Shown in pieces: positions 10,168-19,679 of a stretch of 64,000 nt of DNA. The position numbers and the translations under genes were made by a program. Within the stretch, counting starts at the first letter, position 1; every line of letters starts with the position of its first letter. The notes beneath the pieces were generated by a model. The model saw only the letters and a program-made list of their open reading frames with translations, searched no databases and was not told the DNA's origin. Origin of the DNA: Prasinococcaceae sp. CCMP 1430 (Eukaryota > Plantae > Prasinodermophyta); contig RQSC01000019.1 in NCBI GenBank assembly GCA_013416795.1, forward strand, positions 70,356 to 134,355. Reading direction: 5' to 3'.

Positions 10168-10726
10168 TTACTTCTCGATCTCGACCGAGAGCATGGTGAC
10201 CGGCTCCACGGGCTTGTCGGCGCGGTCGGTCTGCACCTTGGAGATCTTGTTCACGACGTCCATGCCCTCGGTGACCTTGCCGAACACCGGGTGCGCCGAG
10301 GGCGTGCGCGTGTCCCAGAAGTCGAGGAAGCTGTTGTGCACCGTGTTCACGAAGAACTGCGAGCCGCCCGAGTTGGGCGCGCCGGTGTTGGCCATGGAGA
10401 GCGTGCCCGGCTCGTTGGAGATCTGCTCGACCAGCTCGTCGGGGATGTTGCCGCCGGCGTCGCGCGTGATGGTCTGGCCGTCCGGCGTGGTGAACGAGCC
10501 GCCGCCCGGCGGGCCGCCCGTGCCGGCCTGGCGCGAGCTGGGGTCCTTCGACTTGGGGCAGCCGAACTGCAGCATGAAGCCGTCGATCACGCGGTGGAAG
10601 GTCAGGCCGTCGTAGAAGCCCGACTCGGCGAGGTCCACGAAGTTGGAGGCCGTGATGGGCAGCTTGTCCATGTACAGCTCGGCGGTGAAGGAGCCCTCCG
10701 ACGTGGTGAAGACCGCCTTCGGGTTG
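10168..10726 (-). CDS. Cyclophilin-type peptidyl-prolyl isomerase (main exon; upstream exon likely starts at ATG 10970, junction unresolved)
   Basis: [50 protein letters not shown]. The acceptor at 10727 follows an ACTGAC branch site. The ATG at 10970 opens an Ala/Arg-rich targeting-like peptide, but the phases do not join with a single intron. Confidence 0.92.
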
Positions 10727-11283
10727 CTGCAAGTTTTGGGTGGGTGGATCGGGCGTCAGTGGCTGAGGTCGGGCGGTAGATAGATAGATGGCGCGAGGGC
10801 TGCGTGCGCGCCGCGAGCGCGCGAGGGGCCGCGGCACAGGCGACGGCGACTGCGATGCGATCGGATCGGACCGGCGGCCACGTACCCCGAGGCCGTCGCC
10901 ACGAGGCGGCGCGCGGTAGCGCGCGTGCGGCGGCGCGCGCGGCGGACGAGAGGCGCGCGGCGACGGCCATCGCTCCGATCGGTCGGGAGGGTTGGGGGGA
11001 TGAGGGAGAAGGGCGGCGGGGGAGGCGCCGGCTGCAGCGCGTGTGCCCCGCGCGCGCAGCGGCGCGCGCGCGCCGCGGCTGCTGCCTGCAGACCCTCGTC
11101 ATCCCTCGCCGTCCACGTCGCCTGCACCAGCACACCGCGCCCCATCAAACCCAACTGGGCTCGCCCGTGGGCGCGCCACACGCCAAATGCAATCGCCTGC
11201 CTCATGGTTGGTCGCTCCCATTCTTGAACCCCCATTTTCCGCCCTGCGATCACGCCATCAAAAAACAGGGCGGCCAGTGCCTT

Positions 11284-11381
11284 GCCGGGGTAGCTGTCGC
11301 AACTCTCTTTGCATCTACATCAGTCGGTAGAGCGCAAGGCTCTTAACCTTGTGGTCGTGGGTTCGAGCCCCACCTTCGGTG
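11284..11381 (+). tRNA. trnK-CUU: tRNA-Lys(CUU) with a 25-nt non-canonical intron in the D-stem (11296-11320)
   Basis: Removing 11296-11320 gives a 73-nt cloverleaf: GCCGGGG TA GCTC AGTCGGTA GAGC G CAAGG CTCTTAA CCTTG TGGTC GTGGG TTCGAGC CCCAC CTTCGGT G. The anticodon CTT is at 11342-11344, and a T-run follows near 11447-11455. Confidence 0.88.
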
Positions 11382-12110
11382 GAATTTCCTAGATTCCAAA
11401 CGTCACGAAGTATTACGCACAAGTTCCGAAACAACGGAAATGCCCATTTTTTTTTCCGGCCGCGCACACACCTCCCATCCGCGCCCGCCCACACCCTCCA
11501 ACCAGCCACCCAACCCCCCCAGCCCGCCAGCGAGCGCCCCTCTCTCCCGCCTCCCTTCACGCCCCCCCCGGAGGACTGGGCGCTCGCCACCTACAAGGAG
11601 CTGCTCTTCCTCGACACCACCGCGGCGGTGCCCAAGCGAGCGAGCGAGCGAGCCGCGCTGGACGAGCGCGCGCTGACTGAGGCCGCGCTCGCACATCTAT
11701 GACTCTCCGCGGCCCTCGCCACATCCACGATCGGCACCCTCCCCCTCACCTCCGCGCTCACTCCCCTATCCCCCGCGCTCTCTCTCACACACACCACACC
11801 TACTCGGATCGCCGCGTCGTACATGATGGGTGGGTGTGTCACATGTGAGTGCTGTGCGGAGGGGGCCGCGCCGCGTTCCGCGTTCGGGACGCGGCTCCCC
11901 CCCCCCCCCCCAGCACCCAAGCTCGCGCGCGCGGCGTCGGCCGGGCGCCCGCCCGCGGGGAGGGGCTGAGGGCTCCGGCGTCATGTGCCCGCCAGGTCGC
12001 AGGAGCAGGCGGAGGGGCGTGCTCCCGTGACCGGCGAGCGCGCGGCGTCTTGGCGCTCGTTCGTTTTTCTTCGGAGCGTCTGCAGGCATCGCGCTGCAGG
12101 CCTAGCCGCC

Positions 12111-12353
12111 TCAGCCGACCTTCTTGAAGTCCTTCATGTTGGTGGTCTCCACCGTCATGCCGGCCAGGTCGATGCGCGACACGCAGGTGACGTCGTCGGT
12201 GCCGCCCTGATTGTCCGCGAAGAACACGCTCACCTGCGACACGCGCTGGAACTTCACGAAGTGCAGCGGGATGAGCTTCTCGCCCGCCAGCGCCGCCGCG
12301 TCGAGGGTGAGCGTCTGCGCCGGCGTGTGGCTCTCCGCGTCCTCGAAGCCCAT
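12111..12353 (-). CDS. PITH-domain protein, last exon (5' end in gap)
   Basis: MGFEDAES..LIPLHFVKFQRVSQVSVFFADNQGG..SRIDLAG..TTNMKDFKKVG is a typical PITH C-terminus, preceded by a GCTGAC branch site. Confidence 0.88.
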   Translation of the reverse strand: MGFEDAESHTPAQTLTLDAAALAGEKLIPLHFVKFQRVSQVSVFFADNQGGTDDVTCVSRIDLAGMTVETTNMKDFKKVG

Positions 12354-13200
12354 CTTCGCGCGCCGGGCATCGCGGGCCGCGGCGGGGGCGGCGGCGGGCG
12401 CGGGCGCGCGTCAGCTCGAGCTTTCGGCGCGCGCCGNNNNNNNNNNNNNNNNNNNNNNNNNNNNNNNNNNNNNNNNNNNNNNNNNNNNNNNNNNNNNNNN
12501 NNNNNNNNNNNNNNNNNNNNNNNNNNNNNNNNNNNNNNNNNNNNNNNNNNNNNNNNNNNNNNNNNNNNNNNNNNNNNNNNNNNNNNNNNNNNNNNNNNNN
12601 NNNNNNNNNNNNNNNNNNNNNNNNNNNNNNNNNNNNNNNNNNNNNNNNNNNNNNNNNNNNNNNNNNNNNNNNNNNNNNNNNNNNNNNNNNNNNNNNNNNN
12701 NNNNNNNNNNNNNNNNNNNNNNNNNNNNNNNNNNNNNNNNNNNNNNNNNNNNNNNNNNNNNNNNNNNNNNNNNNNNNNNNNNNNNNNNNNNNNNNNNNNN
12801 NNNNNNNNNNNNNNNNNNNNNNNNNNNNNNNNNNNNNNNNNNNNNNNNNNNNNNNNNNNNNNNNNNNNNNNNNNNNNNNNNNNNNNNNNNNNNNNNNNNN
12901 NNNNNNNNNNNNNNNNNNNNNNNNNNNNNNNNNNNNNNNNNNNNNNNNNNNNNNNNNNNNNNNNNNNNNNNNNNNNNNNNNNNNNNNNNNNNNNNNNNNN
13001 NNNNNNNNNNNNNNNNNNNNNNNNNNNNNNNNNNNNNNNNNNNNNNNNNNNNNNNNNNNNNNNNNNNNNNNNNNNNNNNNNNNNNNNNNNNNNNNNNNNN
13101 NNNNNNNNNNNNNNNNNNNNNNNNNNNNNNNNNNNNNNNNNNNCGCCGCCCCCCGCCCCCCGCCCCCCGGCGCACCCCCCCAGCCTGCGCGGCGGCAAAC

Positions 13201-13773
13201 ATGTCGGAGGGCCCCAACGACCCGCTCGGGCCGCGCCGGCCGCTCGTGCGGCGGAGGGACTGGGGGGAGATACCCAACACGCGCGCGCCGAGGGGCGGCG
13301 CGGCGGACTCGGGCAAGGAGACGGCGTTCCTCATCGGGGTCGAGGTGCGCTCCGGAGGCCGGCAAGGCAAGACGCCCTTCTCCATCCACGACTCGCTCGG
13401 CGAGCTCGAGCAGCTCGCGGAGACCGCCGGCCTCGCGGTGGTGGGCTCGACGTACCAGCGCGTCGCCGAGCCCAACCCGAAGAGCTACATCGGCCAGGGC
13501 AAGGTCGACGAGGTGGTCGCCGCGGCCAACGCGCTGGGCGTCGACACGGTGATCTTCGACGACGAGCTGAGCGGCACGCAGCTGCGCAACCTGGAGAAGG
13601 CGCTCGAGGAGTCGGGCGCCGACGTGCGCGTGTGCGACCGCACGGCGCTCATCCTCGACATCTTCTCGCAGCGCGCGGCCACGCGCGAGGGCATGCTCCA
13701 GGTGGAGGCCGCGCAGCTCGAGTACCAAATACCGCGGCTGACGCGCATGTGGACGCACCTGGAGAGGCAGGCG

Positions 13774-13805
<32 letters not shown>

Positions 13806-14772
13806 GCTCAAGGGGATGGGCGAGAAGCAGATCGAGATCGACAAGCGCCTGCTGCGCGACAAGCTCGCGACCATCCGCCGCAGCATCGAGGACGTGCGCG
13901 GCCACCGCCAGCGCTACCGCGACCGGCGGCGCACCGCGCCCATCCCGACGCTCTGCCTCGTGGGCTACACCAACGCGGGCAAGAGCACGCTGCTCAACGC
14001 GCTGGCCGACGCCGGCGTCATCGCGGAGGACAAGCTCTTCGCCACGCTGGACCCCACCACGCGCCGCATCACGCTGCCGAGCGGCAAGGAGGTGCTGGTG
14101 ACCGACACGGTGGGCTTCATCCAGAAGCTGCCCACGCAGCTCGTGGCGGCGTTCCGCGCGACGCTCGAGGAGATCCAGGAGGCGTCGGTCATCGTGCACG
14201 TGTCCGACGTGTCCAACCCGATGGCGGCCGCGCAGTCGGAGGCCGTGCTCGACGTGCTCGACGACCTGGGCGTCGAGGACATCCCGCTCATGCGCGTGTG
14301 GAACAAGATCGACAACGTGGCGGCGCCCGAGGCGCTGCACGCCGTGGCGAGCGCGCGCGGCGACACCGTGTGCGTGAGCGCGCGGACCGGGGAGGGGCTG
14401 GAGCAGTTCGCGCGGCTGCTGGAGGACGCCGTGTCGGAGCTGCTGATACCCATAGACATCCTCGTGCCGTACGACCAGGGCAAGGTCGTGGACACGGTGC
14501 ACCGCGCGGGCGTGGTGGAGCTCGAGGAGTACGGCGAGCAGGGCACGCACATCCGCGGGCGCGCGCCCGCGCAGCTGGCGCAGCAGCTGCAGGACCTCTG
14601 GCTGCAGGCGCCCGAGGACCTCCAGGGCCCGGAGGAGCCGGTCCTGGAGTTCGAGGGCGACGCCGCCGCCGCGGACGGCGGCGGCGCTCCCGACCTCGGC
14701 TTCACCGACGAGGACGCGCAGAGCGACGACTGGCCGGACGCCAGCGCCGACGAGCTGGTGCGCCTGAACTAG
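13201..14772 (+). CDS. hflX: HflX ribosome-associated GTPase (organellar type; may extend into the upstream gap)
   Basis: GELEQLAETAG, YIGQGK, VCDRTALILDIFSQRAATREG.LQVE.AQLEY..PRL, G1 GYTNAGKS, LFATLDPTTR, DTVGFI and NKID. Confidence 0.95.
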
Positions 14773-15610: not shown

Positions 15611-16469
15611 NCCCCACCCGCACCCCACGCCCGCGCGGATCGCACGGCCGCGCTCCCCCAGCGCGCAGAACGACCCATTCCTTCGTTCGGGTCACGGCCG
15701 AATTTCGGATTCATTTTCAAAGTGTGCAATACACATCGTCTTCTATTTCAATCACTTCATTCTACGTTATTTATGAATTTCATTTCTGTGACTTTGACAG
15801 GGGCAACCAGGGTCTGCCTGCGCGCGACGGATTGATTGCGCCCCGAAACGAGATCTCGCATCGTCGAAGAGACTGCGGCCCAGCTGCGCTCGGAGGTCGC
15901 GGCCGCAGTCCGTGATCGTGCACGGGGGTAAATGTACCCACGGGAGAGCTCTTTCTGCGCTGTGCGTATCTGAGCGCGTGCGCGCGGATTTGGATCTTTT
16001 CCGGGTCGTCGGATCGCGCGCGCGCGGCACCGGGCCCCGAACCCTCCCACGGGGAGTAGCGCCGCCCCGTTTCCTTGGTCGAAATGGAAGTGCAATGATG
16101 CGATGATAGACCCTGAAAGCAATGACCGAAAAGGGGTGGGCGGGGGCGCGTGCTGGGCGCGCGCGCGCGCGCGGCGGCGCCGCCAGACNAGTGAACCGGA
16201 GCTGGGGCGACATATTCACGCCTGTCTGCAGGGATGCAGGCAGGACGCCCCGGACACAGCACGGAGAGGGAGCGAGCAGACGCGGTCTTTGTCCGAAGTA
16301 AAGGTTGTCGGTTTAATGTTTCATGGGGGGGTGGGCACGCGCATGGCGCACGGGTGTGCGCATGGAGGCAAGCGCGAGGTACCCACGGGAGGTTCATATA
16401 TATCACAATGCTGTGCGTGGACAATGTTGTGCAGGTGTCGAAGGTTGCGTACGGAAGTCTCAGCGGCTC

Positions 16470-17339
16470 TCAGACGCTCTCATCTCGGCCCATCGAGTGG
16501 CACTCGACCTTGTTCCGCTCGCAGGCGCCGCCGTTGGCCTCGCAGTCGCGCATCGAGGGCCCGCCTAGCAGGCGGTCCGTGCCGCTGGCGTTCAGCCGGA
16601 GCGACTCGTCCTCAGCGCGCTCCGGCGCGCACATCCGCGGCAGCTCCTGCCCGCGGCAGCACGCCTCGGCGGAGTGTGCCACGGGCACACCGAGCGCCGG
16701 GCGGTTGAAGACGAGGTATCCCGCCATGATTCCGAGCACCACGGCGACAAAGAGCTCCACCTGGTACGTCATGGCCACGAGCATGAGCCAGTAGCCCAGC
16801 AGCAGCTGCATGCCGTACGAGGCTGTGTCGGCGGCCTGGTGAGCAAGAGACTTCTTGGCCGCGGCGGGGCGTTTGGACAGCGTGCGGCGCCCCGCGACGA
16901 TGACCTCAACGAGGACGCCCATCGCAAGGGTGAGCACCGCGTATCCGGCCATCTCAGCCTCGCTGGTGACTACCCACCCCTGAAAGAGGAACAGGAGGCA
17001 CGGCTGCATGGGGTCACCGCCTCCCCTGAAGCCGTCCATCCACATCGACACCGCGGGCAGCGCGCTGTTGCAGAACGCGTCGCTGCTCCCGGCGTCGACC
17101 GGACCGAGCGCACCGCCCTGCGGGGGAGGAGGCGGCTCGGACTCGGTTGGGCACGTGAGCTGGCAGCTGTGGCACACCTGTCCCTGCAGCCACGCCGTCC
17201 CATCGGGATACACGCACACCGCGTCTGTGCCGCAGGGGAGGTGCGATGTGTCCTGGCAGGACATCCAGCAGTACTTGAACGGCGCGTCGCACGAACCCTC
17301 GTCCGCGAGCGCGCGACGCGCGACGCCGGCGCCGGCGCC
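16470..17339 (-). CDS. Mirror copy of the Ctr copper transporter fragment (possibly artefactual)
   Basis: Exact reverse complement of 17340-18209. Confidence 0.4.
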   Translation of the reverse strand, partial: GAGAGVARRALADEGSCDAPFKYCWMSCQDTSHLPCGTDAVCVYPDGTAWLQGQVCHSCQLTCPTESEPPPPPQGGALGPVDAGSSDAFCNSALPAVSMWMDGFRGGGDPMQPCLLFLFQGWVVTSEAEMAGYAVLTLAMGVLVEVIVAGRRTLSKRPAAAKKSLAHQAADTASYGMQLLLGYWLMLVAMTYQVELFVAVVLGIMAGYLVFNRPALGVPVAHSAEACCRGQELPRMCAPERAEDESLRLNASGTDRLLGGPSMRDCEANGGACERNKVECHSMGRDESV

Positions 17340-18209
17340 GGCGCCGGCGCCGGCGTCGCGCGTCGCGCGCTCGCGGACGAGGGTTCGTGCGACGCGCCGT
17401 TCAAGTACTGCTGGATGTCCTGCCAGGACACATCGCACCTCCCCTGCGGCACAGACGCGGTGTGCGTGTATCCCGATGGGACGGCGTGGCTGCAGGGACA
17501 GGTGTGCCACAGCTGCCAGCTCACGTGCCCAACCGAGTCCGAGCCGCCTCCTCCCCCGCAGGGCGGTGCGCTCGGTCCGGTCGACGCCGGGAGCAGCGAC
17601 GCGTTCTGCAACAGCGCGCTGCCCGCGGTGTCGATGTGGATGGACGGCTTCAGGGGAGGCGGTGACCCCATGCAGCCGTGCCTCCTGTTCCTCTTTCAGG
17701 GGTGGGTAGTCACCAGCGAGGCTGAGATGGCCGGATACGCGGTGCTCACCCTTGCGATGGGCGTCCTCGTTGAGGTCATCGTCGCGGGGCGCCGCACGCT
17801 GTCCAAACGCCCCGCCGCGGCCAAGAAGTCTCTTGCTCACCAGGCCGCCGACACAGCCTCGTACGGCATGCAGCTGCTGCTGGGCTACTGGCTCATGCTC
17901 GTGGCCATGACGTACCAGGTGGAGCTCTTTGTCGCCGTGGTGCTCGGAATCATGGCGGGATACCTCGTCTTCAACCGCCCGGCGCTCGGTGTGCCCGTGG
18001 CACACTCCGCCGAGGCGTGCTGCCGCGGGCAGGAGCTGCCGCGGATGTGCGCGCCGGAGCGCGCTGAGGACGAGTCGCTCCGGCTGAACGCCAGCGGCAC
18101 GGACCGCCTGCTAGGCGGGCCCTCGATGCGCGACTGCGAGGCCAACGGCGGCGCCTGCGAGCGGAACAAGGTCGAGTGCCACTCGATGGGCCGAGATGAG
18201 AGCGTCTGA
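17340..18209 (+). CDS. Ctr-family copper transporter, 5'-truncated at the palindrome centre
   Basis: FCN..SMWMDGF, CLLFLFQGWVV and three hydrophobic segments, with the MxxxM motif (WLMLVAMTY) and a GxxxG (GIMAG). The Cys-rich segment precedes the first TM. Confidence 0.88.
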   Translation, partial: GAGAGVARRALADEGSCDAPFKYCWMSCQDTSHLPCGTDAVCVYPDGTAWLQGQVCHSCQLTCPTESEPPPPPQGGALGPVDAGSSDAFCNSALPAVSMWMDGFRGGGDPMQPCLLFLFQGWVVTSEAEMAGYAVLTLAMGVLVEVIVAGRRTLSKRPAAAKKSLAHQAADTASYGMQLLLGYWLMLVAMTYQVELFVAVVLGIMAGYLVFNRPALGVPVAHSAEACCRGQELPRMCAPERAEDESLRLNASGTDRLLGGPSMRDCEANGGACERNKVECHSMGRDESV

Positions 18210-18484
18210 GAGCCGCTGAGACTTCCGTACGCAACCTTCGACACCTGCACAACATTGTCCACGCACAGCATTGTGATATATATGAACCTCCCGTGGGTAC
18301 CTCGCGCTTGCCTCCATGCGCACACCCGTGCGCCATGCGCGTGCCCACCCCCCCATGAAACATTAAACCGACAACCTTTACTTCGGACAAAGACCGCGTC
18401 TGCTCGCTCCCTCTCCGTGCTGTGTCCGGGGCGTCCTGCCTGCATCCCTGCAGACAGGCGTGAATATGTCGCCCCAGCTCCGGT

Positions 18485-19679
18485 TCACTGCAGGCACTCG
18501 AGCGCCATGGCCTTCTCCTCCACGAGCTCCTTGGCGGTGGTGTCCATCTTGGCGCGGCTGGCATCGTCTATCTCGAGCCCGTTTACGATGGTCCACGCGC
18601 CGTCCTTGCACGTCACCGGGAAAGAGTACACCAGGTCCGCGGGCACACCGTAGGAGTTGCCGTCTGAGATCACCCCCATGGACACCCAGGTGCCCTCCGG
18701 TGTGCCCAGCACCCAGTTGCGCACGTGATCGCACACCGAGCTGGCGGCGGAGAGCGCGCTGCTCAGCTTGCGCGCCTTGATGATGGCCGCGCCGCGCTGC
18801 TGGACGGTGGTGACGAAGTCGCCGTCGAGGTACGCGTCATCTCCCACCGCCTCGCGAATCGGCGTGCCATCGACCGTGCCGTGGTTCACATCGGGGTACT
18901 GCGTGGACGAGTGGTTGCCCCAGATGATGACATTCTTGACGGTGCTGACGGCCTTGCCCGTGCGCTCCGCGACCTGCCCGAGCGCGCGGTTGTGGTCGAG
19001 GCGCGTGAGGCACGTGATGTTCTCGCGGGGGATCGACGGCGCGTACTTCGACAGCACCCACGCGTTGGTGTTCGCCGGATTGGCCACGACAACTACCTTG
19101 CAGTCCTTCGCCGCGTGTGCCTCAAGCGCGCTCGCCGTAGCCTTGTAGATGCTCACGTTCTTGCCCATGACCTCCTTGCGCTCCATGCCCGCCTTGCGCG
19201 GGAAGCCACCGACCAAAATGGCCACGTCGACGCCGGCACAAGCCGCTGCCGCATCGGTCGTCGCGAGCGTGCCCTGCAGCAGCGGGAAGGCGCTGTCGAC
19301 GAGCTCCATCTCGACGCCCTTCAGCGCCTCCTCGGCAGGCGGTATGTCCAGCATGTGAATGATCACCGGGGTGTCTGCATGGGGCGGGTGGACGAGGCGC
19401 GGCGTGCAGCGCGCGAGCGCAACCGCCACCCGCGCGCGTCAGCAATCGTGCGCGCGCTGGCCAGCGCCATCGCCTGACCAACCTTCCGGCGGAGATTCAC
19501 GCGCACACGCAGCGCTGCGCCGCGTGCCCACTGCGCGTCCGCGCGCTCGCTGCGCATCCGCGCCCCCGCTGCGCGCCCGCACCTGCTCCGAGCAGCGCGC
19601 CGCGGCATATCTGCGGCAGCAGCGCGTAGCCGATCTGGCCGGCCGCGCCCGTGACGAGCACGCGCTTCGCGGCGGCCAT
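18485..19679 (-). CDS. MDH: Cytosolic NAD-dependent malate dehydrogenase (exons 19583-19679 and 18485-19374)
   Basis: [62 protein letters not shown] and [11 protein letters not shown]. The GT..CAG intron restores the frame (G+AC = D). Confidence 0.97.

Follow-up and report, generated by a model that had tools for sequence, protein, structure and literature searches.

Can a eukaryotic nuclear tRNA gene of the green lineage be interrupted inside its D-stem and still deliver a functional tRNA? Introns of eukaryotic tRNA genes are held to lie only at position 37/38, and the splicing endonuclease is held to measure from the mature tRNA body. To our knowledge, the documented nuclear exceptions come from red algae and relict nucleomorphs. 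The question is raised by a tRNA-Lys(CUU) gene at 11284-11381 (+ strand) of the 64-kb window (the whole stretch of DNA analysed here, 64,000 nucleotides), which is split after tRNA position 12 by a 25-nt insert (11296-11320). We regard it as likely, with a probability of about 0.7, that this is a working nuclear tRNA-Lys(CUU) gene, the ectopic 25-nt intron of which would be removed by the tRNA splicing endonuclease via a relaxed bulge-helix-bulge (BHB) motif.

Layout and integrity of the interrupted gene

All parts of the gene are located on the + strand. Exon 1 (11284-11295) comprises tRNA positions 1-12, i.e. the acceptor 5' strand GCCGGGG, U8 and A9, and the D-stem nucleotides G10, C11 and U12. 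Its extent is based on the ARAGORN cloverleaf obtained once the insert is removed and on the alignment of a covariance model (R1, see below), which begins at 11284. The insert, a putative ectopic intron (11296-11320), separates tRNA positions 12 and 13. Exon 2 (11321-11381) consists of 61 bases from C13 to the discriminator G73 (11381), i.e. tRNA positions 13-73, and contains the anticodon CTT (11342-11344) and an intact B box (GGTTCGAGCCC, 11360-11370). The tRNA body is of the eukaryotic type and CCA is not encoded. The insert is thus read from the sequence at 12/13, i.e. at a position other than 37/38, and its removal restores the mature tRNA sequence. The boundaries are ambiguous by 1 nt: both are preceded by a T, so that the insert may equally well be placed at 11295-11319, and every other shift fails in the boundary test. 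The first-pass annotation had placed a 25-nt insert after nucleotide 12 and held that the two cuts rebuild the D-stem GCTC. The insert is found where it was placed, and cutting after T11295 and T11320 does rebuild this stem.

The insert has a GC content of 44% (counted by hand); that of the published Prasinoderma coloniale genome is 69.8% (PMC7455551). It is unique in the window, lacks a target-site duplication and is not a repeat; an origin as repeat or transposon was ruled out on these features. The exon 1 sequence (RCCGRRGTAGCT) has its sole zero-mismatch match in the window at 11284-11295, besides two sites with one mismatch, and no alternative 5' exon was found elsewhere in the window. 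Other interrupted tRNAs were not detected in the 64-kb window by a sensitive Rfam scan.

On the genomic sequence ARAGORN reports no tRNA anywhere in the 64-kb window; the "tRNA-Arg(tcg) with intron" that its relaxed mode gives for the genomic form was discarded as a poor artefact. After deletion of 11296-11320, a check proposed with the original observation, the same program returns a complete and clean tRNA-Lys(ctt) cloverleaf. The Rfam tRNA model RF00005 yields a partial match (11316-11373, model positions 8-63) of 30.9 bits, just above the gathering score of 29, and its alignment misreads the last five intron bases as tRNA positions 8-12. The expectation that standard scans mistake this gene is therefore borne out, as one finder misses it and the other truncates it. 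A covariance model (R1) constructed from intronless Lys(CUU) genes of metagenomic origin (seven distinct sequences, standard cloverleaf) has a single match in the whole window, exactly at 11284-11381 (model positions 1-73, 71.8 bits, E 1.5e-17), and its alignment takes up the 25 extra bases inside the D-arm. With the speed filters switched off, a shorter alignment (11313-11381, 64.5 bits) is obtained that misses exon 1. Uninterrupted relatives score 101-105 bits under the same model as against 71.8 bits here; the difference of about 30 bits is therefore due to the insert, the tRNA sequence being otherwise without fault. The full-length R1 match and the ARAGORN call after deletion together confirm the earlier identification of a nuclear tRNA-Lys(CUU) with an insert in its D-stem. 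The tRNA-Lys(CUU) gene is computationally well supported as such; its intron is a putative one.

From position 8 to position 65 the spliced product does not differ from the consensus of green-type metagenomic Lys(CUU) genes, and the sequence therefore gives no sign of decay. Within exon 2, positions 13-65 are identical to those of intronless metagenomic Lys(CUU) genes. The acceptor stem includes three G-U pairs (1-72, 5-68 and 6-67), two of them adjacent. As G1-U72 is common to four of the seven distinct reference relatives (L015, L017, L021 and L030), it belongs to the family and is no mark of decay; the adjacent pairs (5-68, 6-67) are specific to the window gene.

Two of these reference contigs are rich in RNA genes. 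On L030 (JGI Ga0115004_10255882, positions 1-1042), a contig of 1 kb, one strand encodes all of seven tRNAs (Cys, three Val, Ile, Lys and Ala), a 5S rRNA and an SRP RNA (108 bits), and the tRNA-Lys(CUU) of this contig has GCCG...CGGUG and G1-U72 in common with the window gene. L017 (JGI Ga0307984_1041828, positions 1-1457) is a contig of 1.46 kb and 61% GC with a dozen tRNA-like R1 matches, a compact tRNA gene cluster from a GC-rich eukaryote.

The A box is divided by the insert; a split A box has likewise been described for Cyanidioschyzon merolae (PMC3728597). An A6 run (11260-11265, + strand) lies 19-24 nt upstream of tRNA position 1 as an AT-rich patch within a spacer of 65-70% GC, and may represent a TATA-like upstream Pol III element, as far as its composition and position suggest. 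The sole run of at least four T after the tRNA is a T9 run (11447-11455, + strand) 66 nt downstream, a candidate Pol III terminator that would imply an unusually long trailer. Runs of T9 or longer occur eight times on the + strand of the window, and the chance of one falling within 100 nt downstream is about 1.3% (p about 0.013). Together, the A6 and T9 runs would be consistent with a Pol III unit whose trailer is long. The 65-nt trailer (within 11382-11455) is AT-rich (about 44% GC) and contains a small TTCCG/CGGAA hairpin. It matches no Rfam family and shows no structure above shuffles, on which grounds a snoRNA or other RNA in the trailer was rejected.

The principal alternative to a working gene is a young, unspliced pseudogene, in which a 25-bp insertion has disabled one copy of a multi-copy family and the exons are intact as the event is recent. 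A major isoacceptor such as Lys(CUU) is usually multi-copy, and one copy could hence be lost harmlessly. The rejection of the genomic form by ARAGORN, the partial Rfam match, the split A box and the three G-U pairs of the acceptor stem are all compatible with such a loss; the 73 exon positions, however, contain no lesion besides the insert, the terminator-like T9 run is retained, and the insert carries neither a target-site duplication nor repeat character. We consider the pseudogene distinctly less probable than the working gene, at odds of the order of one in five, a judgement to which the pairing at the junctions contributes on both sides.

Pairing at the exon-intron junctions

The exon strand G7-U8-A9-G10 (GTAG, 11290-11293) and the intron strand CUAC (11315-11318, C32 to C35 in precursor numbering) form four Watson-Crick pairs in the canonical BHB register. 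The cuts U12|G13 and U37|C38 (precursor numbering) each fall 2 nt 3' of a strand of this central helix, the same cut geometry as in the canonical BHB and in the anticodon-intron pairing of ordinary pre-tRNAs. How often such an arrangement arises by chance was assessed under three null models with 100,000 random inserts each; all equivalent boundaries and both motif topologies were allowed. A perfect in-register 4-bp helix occurs in 2.0% of intron shuffles, 1.4% of uniform 25-mers and 0.8% of 25-mers drawn from the window, and this range of 0.8-2% likewise argues against a mere disabling insertion. The intron hairpin, the inner helix h' (11299-11312), consists of a GCAA (11299-11302)/UUGC (11309-11312) stem with a 6-nt loop and has a pairing probability of 0.45-0.60 in the ensemble of the whole precursor. 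Both the perfectly complementary GTAG/CTAC helix and the GCAA/TTGC hairpin had been recognised in the first reading of the sequence.

The designation of the motif as a bulge-helix-bulge stands for the helix and its register, but fails for the two 3-nt bulges, both of which are open loops without an adjoining closing pair. The strict hBHBh' motif requires two 3-nt bulges closed by helices of more than two pairs, and these are not formed. On the 5' side the mismatches U14/U31 and C15/A30 precede h', resulting in a 5x2 loop instead of a closed 3-nt bulge; on the 3' side G6/A39 is unpaired. The outer helix h is possible only in two ways. Either acceptor pairs 1-6 stack on the central helix, by which the rest of the tRNA falls inside the 3' "bulge", or CCGG (11285-11288) pairs with TCGG (11324-11327) in competition with the acceptor stem. 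Furthermore, CUAC (11315-11318) is also complementary to G19-G22 of exon 2, and this competing hairpin is present in the minimum-energy fold. Under relaxed BHB/BHL criteria, which call for one 3-nt bulge and one loop, the helix and the cut geometry fit, but both cut sites are placed in loops larger than 3 nt.

Thermodynamic support for a BHB was sought and dismissed. The central helix reaches a pairing probability of about 4% in the ensemble of the whole precursor, and the local 47-nt fold is not more stable than its shuffles (z = -0.02). According to nearest-neighbour energies the BHB-like conformer (-21.1 kcal/mol) is isoenergetic with cloverleaf conformers in which the intron is extruded (-20.6 and -22.1 kcal/mol). 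For the local BHB-like model the dG is -6.1 kcal/mol, a value between those of two spliced introns of C. merolae, -11.1 for a strict motif and +1.15 for one lacking a central helix (PMC3728597). Since folding energy does not favour the motif, the case for a BHB rests on register and not on stability, and the motif is, in terms of the pairing models, best called relaxed BHB-like and not strict bulge-helix-bulge. An imperfect motif that is not thermodynamically favoured is also what a pseudogene might display.

The same observations bear on a second alternative, in which the insert is indeed removed, by a recognition other than that of the GTAG/CTAC helix, e.g. of the D-stem with an extruded hairpin, or with no defined BHB at all. 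The equal energies of the extruded cloverleaf and the BHB-like conformer and the unclosed bulges are in agreement with it, as are the spliced introns of C. merolae without central helix (PMC3728597) and the BHB-less ectopic introns of Guillardia theta, as cited in PMC3728597 and PMC3978253. Nevertheless, the exact register of a 4-bp helix is improbable by chance, and both cuts are symmetric, as the dimeric active-site pair requires. We consider recognition of this kind improbable, clearly more so than the pseudogene.

Under the preferred reading, a gene spliced via its relaxed BHB, RNA polymerase III would transcribe the gene from an intact B box and a split A box, possibly assisted by the upstream AT-rich element, and transcription would stop at the T9 run 66 nt downstream. 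In the precursor, G7-G10 would pair with the intron CUAC in a helix able to stack on what is left of the acceptor stem, and the GCAA/UUGC hairpin would form within the intron. The tRNA splicing endonuclease, judging from the established enzymology of the family, would cut U12|G13 and U37|C38 regardless of their position in the tRNA. Joining of the halves by tRNA ligase would then restore the D-stem pairs G10-C25, C11-G24, U12-A23 and C13-G22. The expected product is a standard green-lineage tRNA-Lys(CUU) reading AAG, essentially the sole lysine codon used nearby.

Host genome, neighbouring genes and related contigs

Two proteins of the window are 100% identical to EukProt models of P. coloniale, a malate dehydrogenase ORF over 297 residues (PRCOL_00004158) and an HflX GTPase ORF over 542 residues (PRCOL_00004156); the window is therefore P. 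coloniale nuclear DNA. The best named relatives of both ORFs are green algae and land plants. According to an analysis of GC at third codon positions the tRNA gene sits in non-coding DNA. The last coding stretch to its left is a cyclophilin gene (10171-10671, - strand), and a strong coding signal to its right starts only near 12190. The HflX gene begins inside an N-run (12437-13143). N-runs mask real sequence here: 24 N-terminal residues of the annotated P. coloniale HflX (P0255) fall within this run, directly ahead of 13144, and a Tara contig (L036) begins at about the edge of this run.

All lysine codons (39/39) in three neighbouring genes (10171-10671, - strand; 13144-14769, + strand; 18488-19378, - strand) are AAG, and tRNA-Lys(CUU) is therefore the essential lysine decoder here. 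The same three genes have a GC content of 0.9-1.0 at third codon positions. Such an extreme codon usage should leave tRNA-Lys(UUU) nearly idle.

A perfect palindrome with zero spacer occupies 16190-18489, with two arms of 1150 nt (16190-17339 and 17340-18489) that are 100% complementary. A Ctr copper-transporter ORF is thereby present in duplicate, on both strands, and a single N (16189) adjoins the palindrome. Two Tara contigs (L001, L002) match one arm, and their alignment ends at the centre. The palindrome is probably an assembly artefact; it is not shared by the Tara contigs, and the assembly therefore probably has local errors.

Tara contigs of wild P. coloniale-like populations have 95-99% DNA identity to the window. 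For ten cyclophilin contigs (10 of 17 on record, L003-L012) the identity is 93-98%, with many indels in their non-coding parts. All ten break off no more than about 150 nt from a CG-repeat near 10934 (10919-10947), some 350 nt short of the tRNA, and none of the Tara contigs fetched covers the tRNA gene. Exact look-ups of the two ATG ORFs beside the tRNA in Tara/ENA contigs yielded no match, nor did a homology search with a 180-aa ORF overlapping the tRNA or a search for the 3' exon in viral contigs. At the HflX locus of a related species (L033/L034) a tRNA gives no signal even at E <= 1, and the neighbour is a different one. These two ENA metagenome contigs (5-9 kb) encode an HflX of 79% identity beside DnaJ-like, HPAT and serine acetyltransferase genes, and probably belong to a second Prasinoderma-like species in marine metagenomes.

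JGI metagenomes were scanned with a gapped pattern (TAGCT, 8-38 nt, then the green-type Lys(CUU) 3' part), and no interrupted Lys(CUU) orthologue was detected there: the 20 loci returned are all intronless, ordinary genes with a chance TAGCT upstream, and were used only as a reference set.

An assembly or sequencing artefact, by which the 25 bases would be absent from the real genomic DNA, is highly improbable: although the same scaffold has the perfect 1150-nt zero-spacer palindrome 5 kb away, absent from Tara contigs, and no independent contig fetched spans the tRNA, a random mis-assembly would not add exactly 25 nt, keep the exon ends and supply an in-register helix, and the window holds no second copy from which the insert could derive.

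Relation to known tRNA introns and significance

[quoted passage not shown] As in that species (Soma et al. 2013, PMC3728597), the gene is nuclear with a short D-stem intron, putative and of 25 nt here as against 11-69 nt there, which interrupts the A box, and a 4-bp central helix is found at the junctions, relaxed motif types being accepted there. In contrast, the host belongs to the green lineage (Prasinodermophyta) and the gene has one intron and no permutation. Unlike the D-stem introns of C. merolae tRNA-Phe and tRNA-Ile, which form a strict hBHBh' (PMC3728597), the present one has two open loops.

In Chondrus crispus, nuclear tRNA introns occur in the D-loop (20/21) and T-loop (58/59) (PlantRNA 2.0, doi 10.1101/2021.12.21.473619). 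Like the gene described here, those of Chondrus are mis-scored, as pseudogenes by tRNAscan-SE, and were recovered by manual inspection; they differ in having two fixed loop positions, whereas the present intron lies inside the 5' strand of the D-stem at 12/13. Archaeal, mainly crenarchaeal, non-canonical tRNA introns possess a strict or relaxed BHB (Marck and Grosjean 2003, as cited in PMC3978253 and PMC13728533), the relaxed forms being processed by (alpha-beta)2-type and related endonucleases according to the same citing papers. They share with the window gene a 4-bp helix flanked by both cleavage sites and a position-independent recognition, here proposed. The window gene is set apart from them by its place in a eukaryotic nuclear genome and by a tRNA body of eukaryotic type in which CCA is not encoded, and the enzyme would be eukaryotic TSEN.

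[quoted passage not shown] 2010, as cited in PMC3978253 and PMC13578239). They too are green algae with a non-standard tRNA gene architecture, BHB-dependent in their case as cited there, but their genes are permuted and the window gene is interrupted at an ectopic site. The nucleomorph of Guillardia theta, the relict nuclear genome of a eukaryote, likewise has short introns outside 37/38 (Kawach et al. 2005, as cited in PMC3728597); according to that citation most of them form no BHB, whereas an in-register central helix is found here.

The first-pass annotation stated that D-arm introns are reported from a few algae such as Cyanidioschyzon and some prasinophytes. The former is correct (PMC3728597); the latter is not backed by the literature examined. 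Reviews describe green algae as having permuted tRNA genes and almost no ectopic introns, and a 2026 review (PMC13578239) gives the same picture. Our literature search yielded no paper that treats nuclear tRNA introns in P. coloniale, and the available portions of the main text and supplements of its genome paper give no account of nuclear tRNA genes. The window gene is thus an addition of a known kind of element, familiar from red algae and archaea, in a lineage without an earlier description of it.

The annotation further took the intron to imply a relaxed-specificity endonuclease in this lineage, which is overstated. Eukaryotic TSEN has been reported to cut both BHB and BHL substrates (PMC13728533), and a special relaxed endonuclease therefore need not be inferred; such an enzyme is plausible, and is not required by the window locus. 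For plant TSEN, a reduced build resembling (alpha-beta)2 is considered possible (PMC13728533).

More tentatively, P. coloniale might possess a widely disrupted nuclear tRNA gene set like that of C. merolae, in which decoding of AAG may depend on the removal of the D-stem intron; we hold this to be rather unlikely. If the intron is spliced, essential tRNA genes are missed by standard annotation in genomes of this kind, in the present case one for the sole lysine codon in use nearby. [quoted passage not shown] Were the tRNA gene set widely disrupted as outlined above, position-independent, BHB-guided tRNA splicing would be a trait common to red and green Archaeplastida, either ancestral or repeatedly evolved. 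P. coloniale would then provide a green-lineage system for how the eukaryotic TSEN escapes its 37/38 "ruler".
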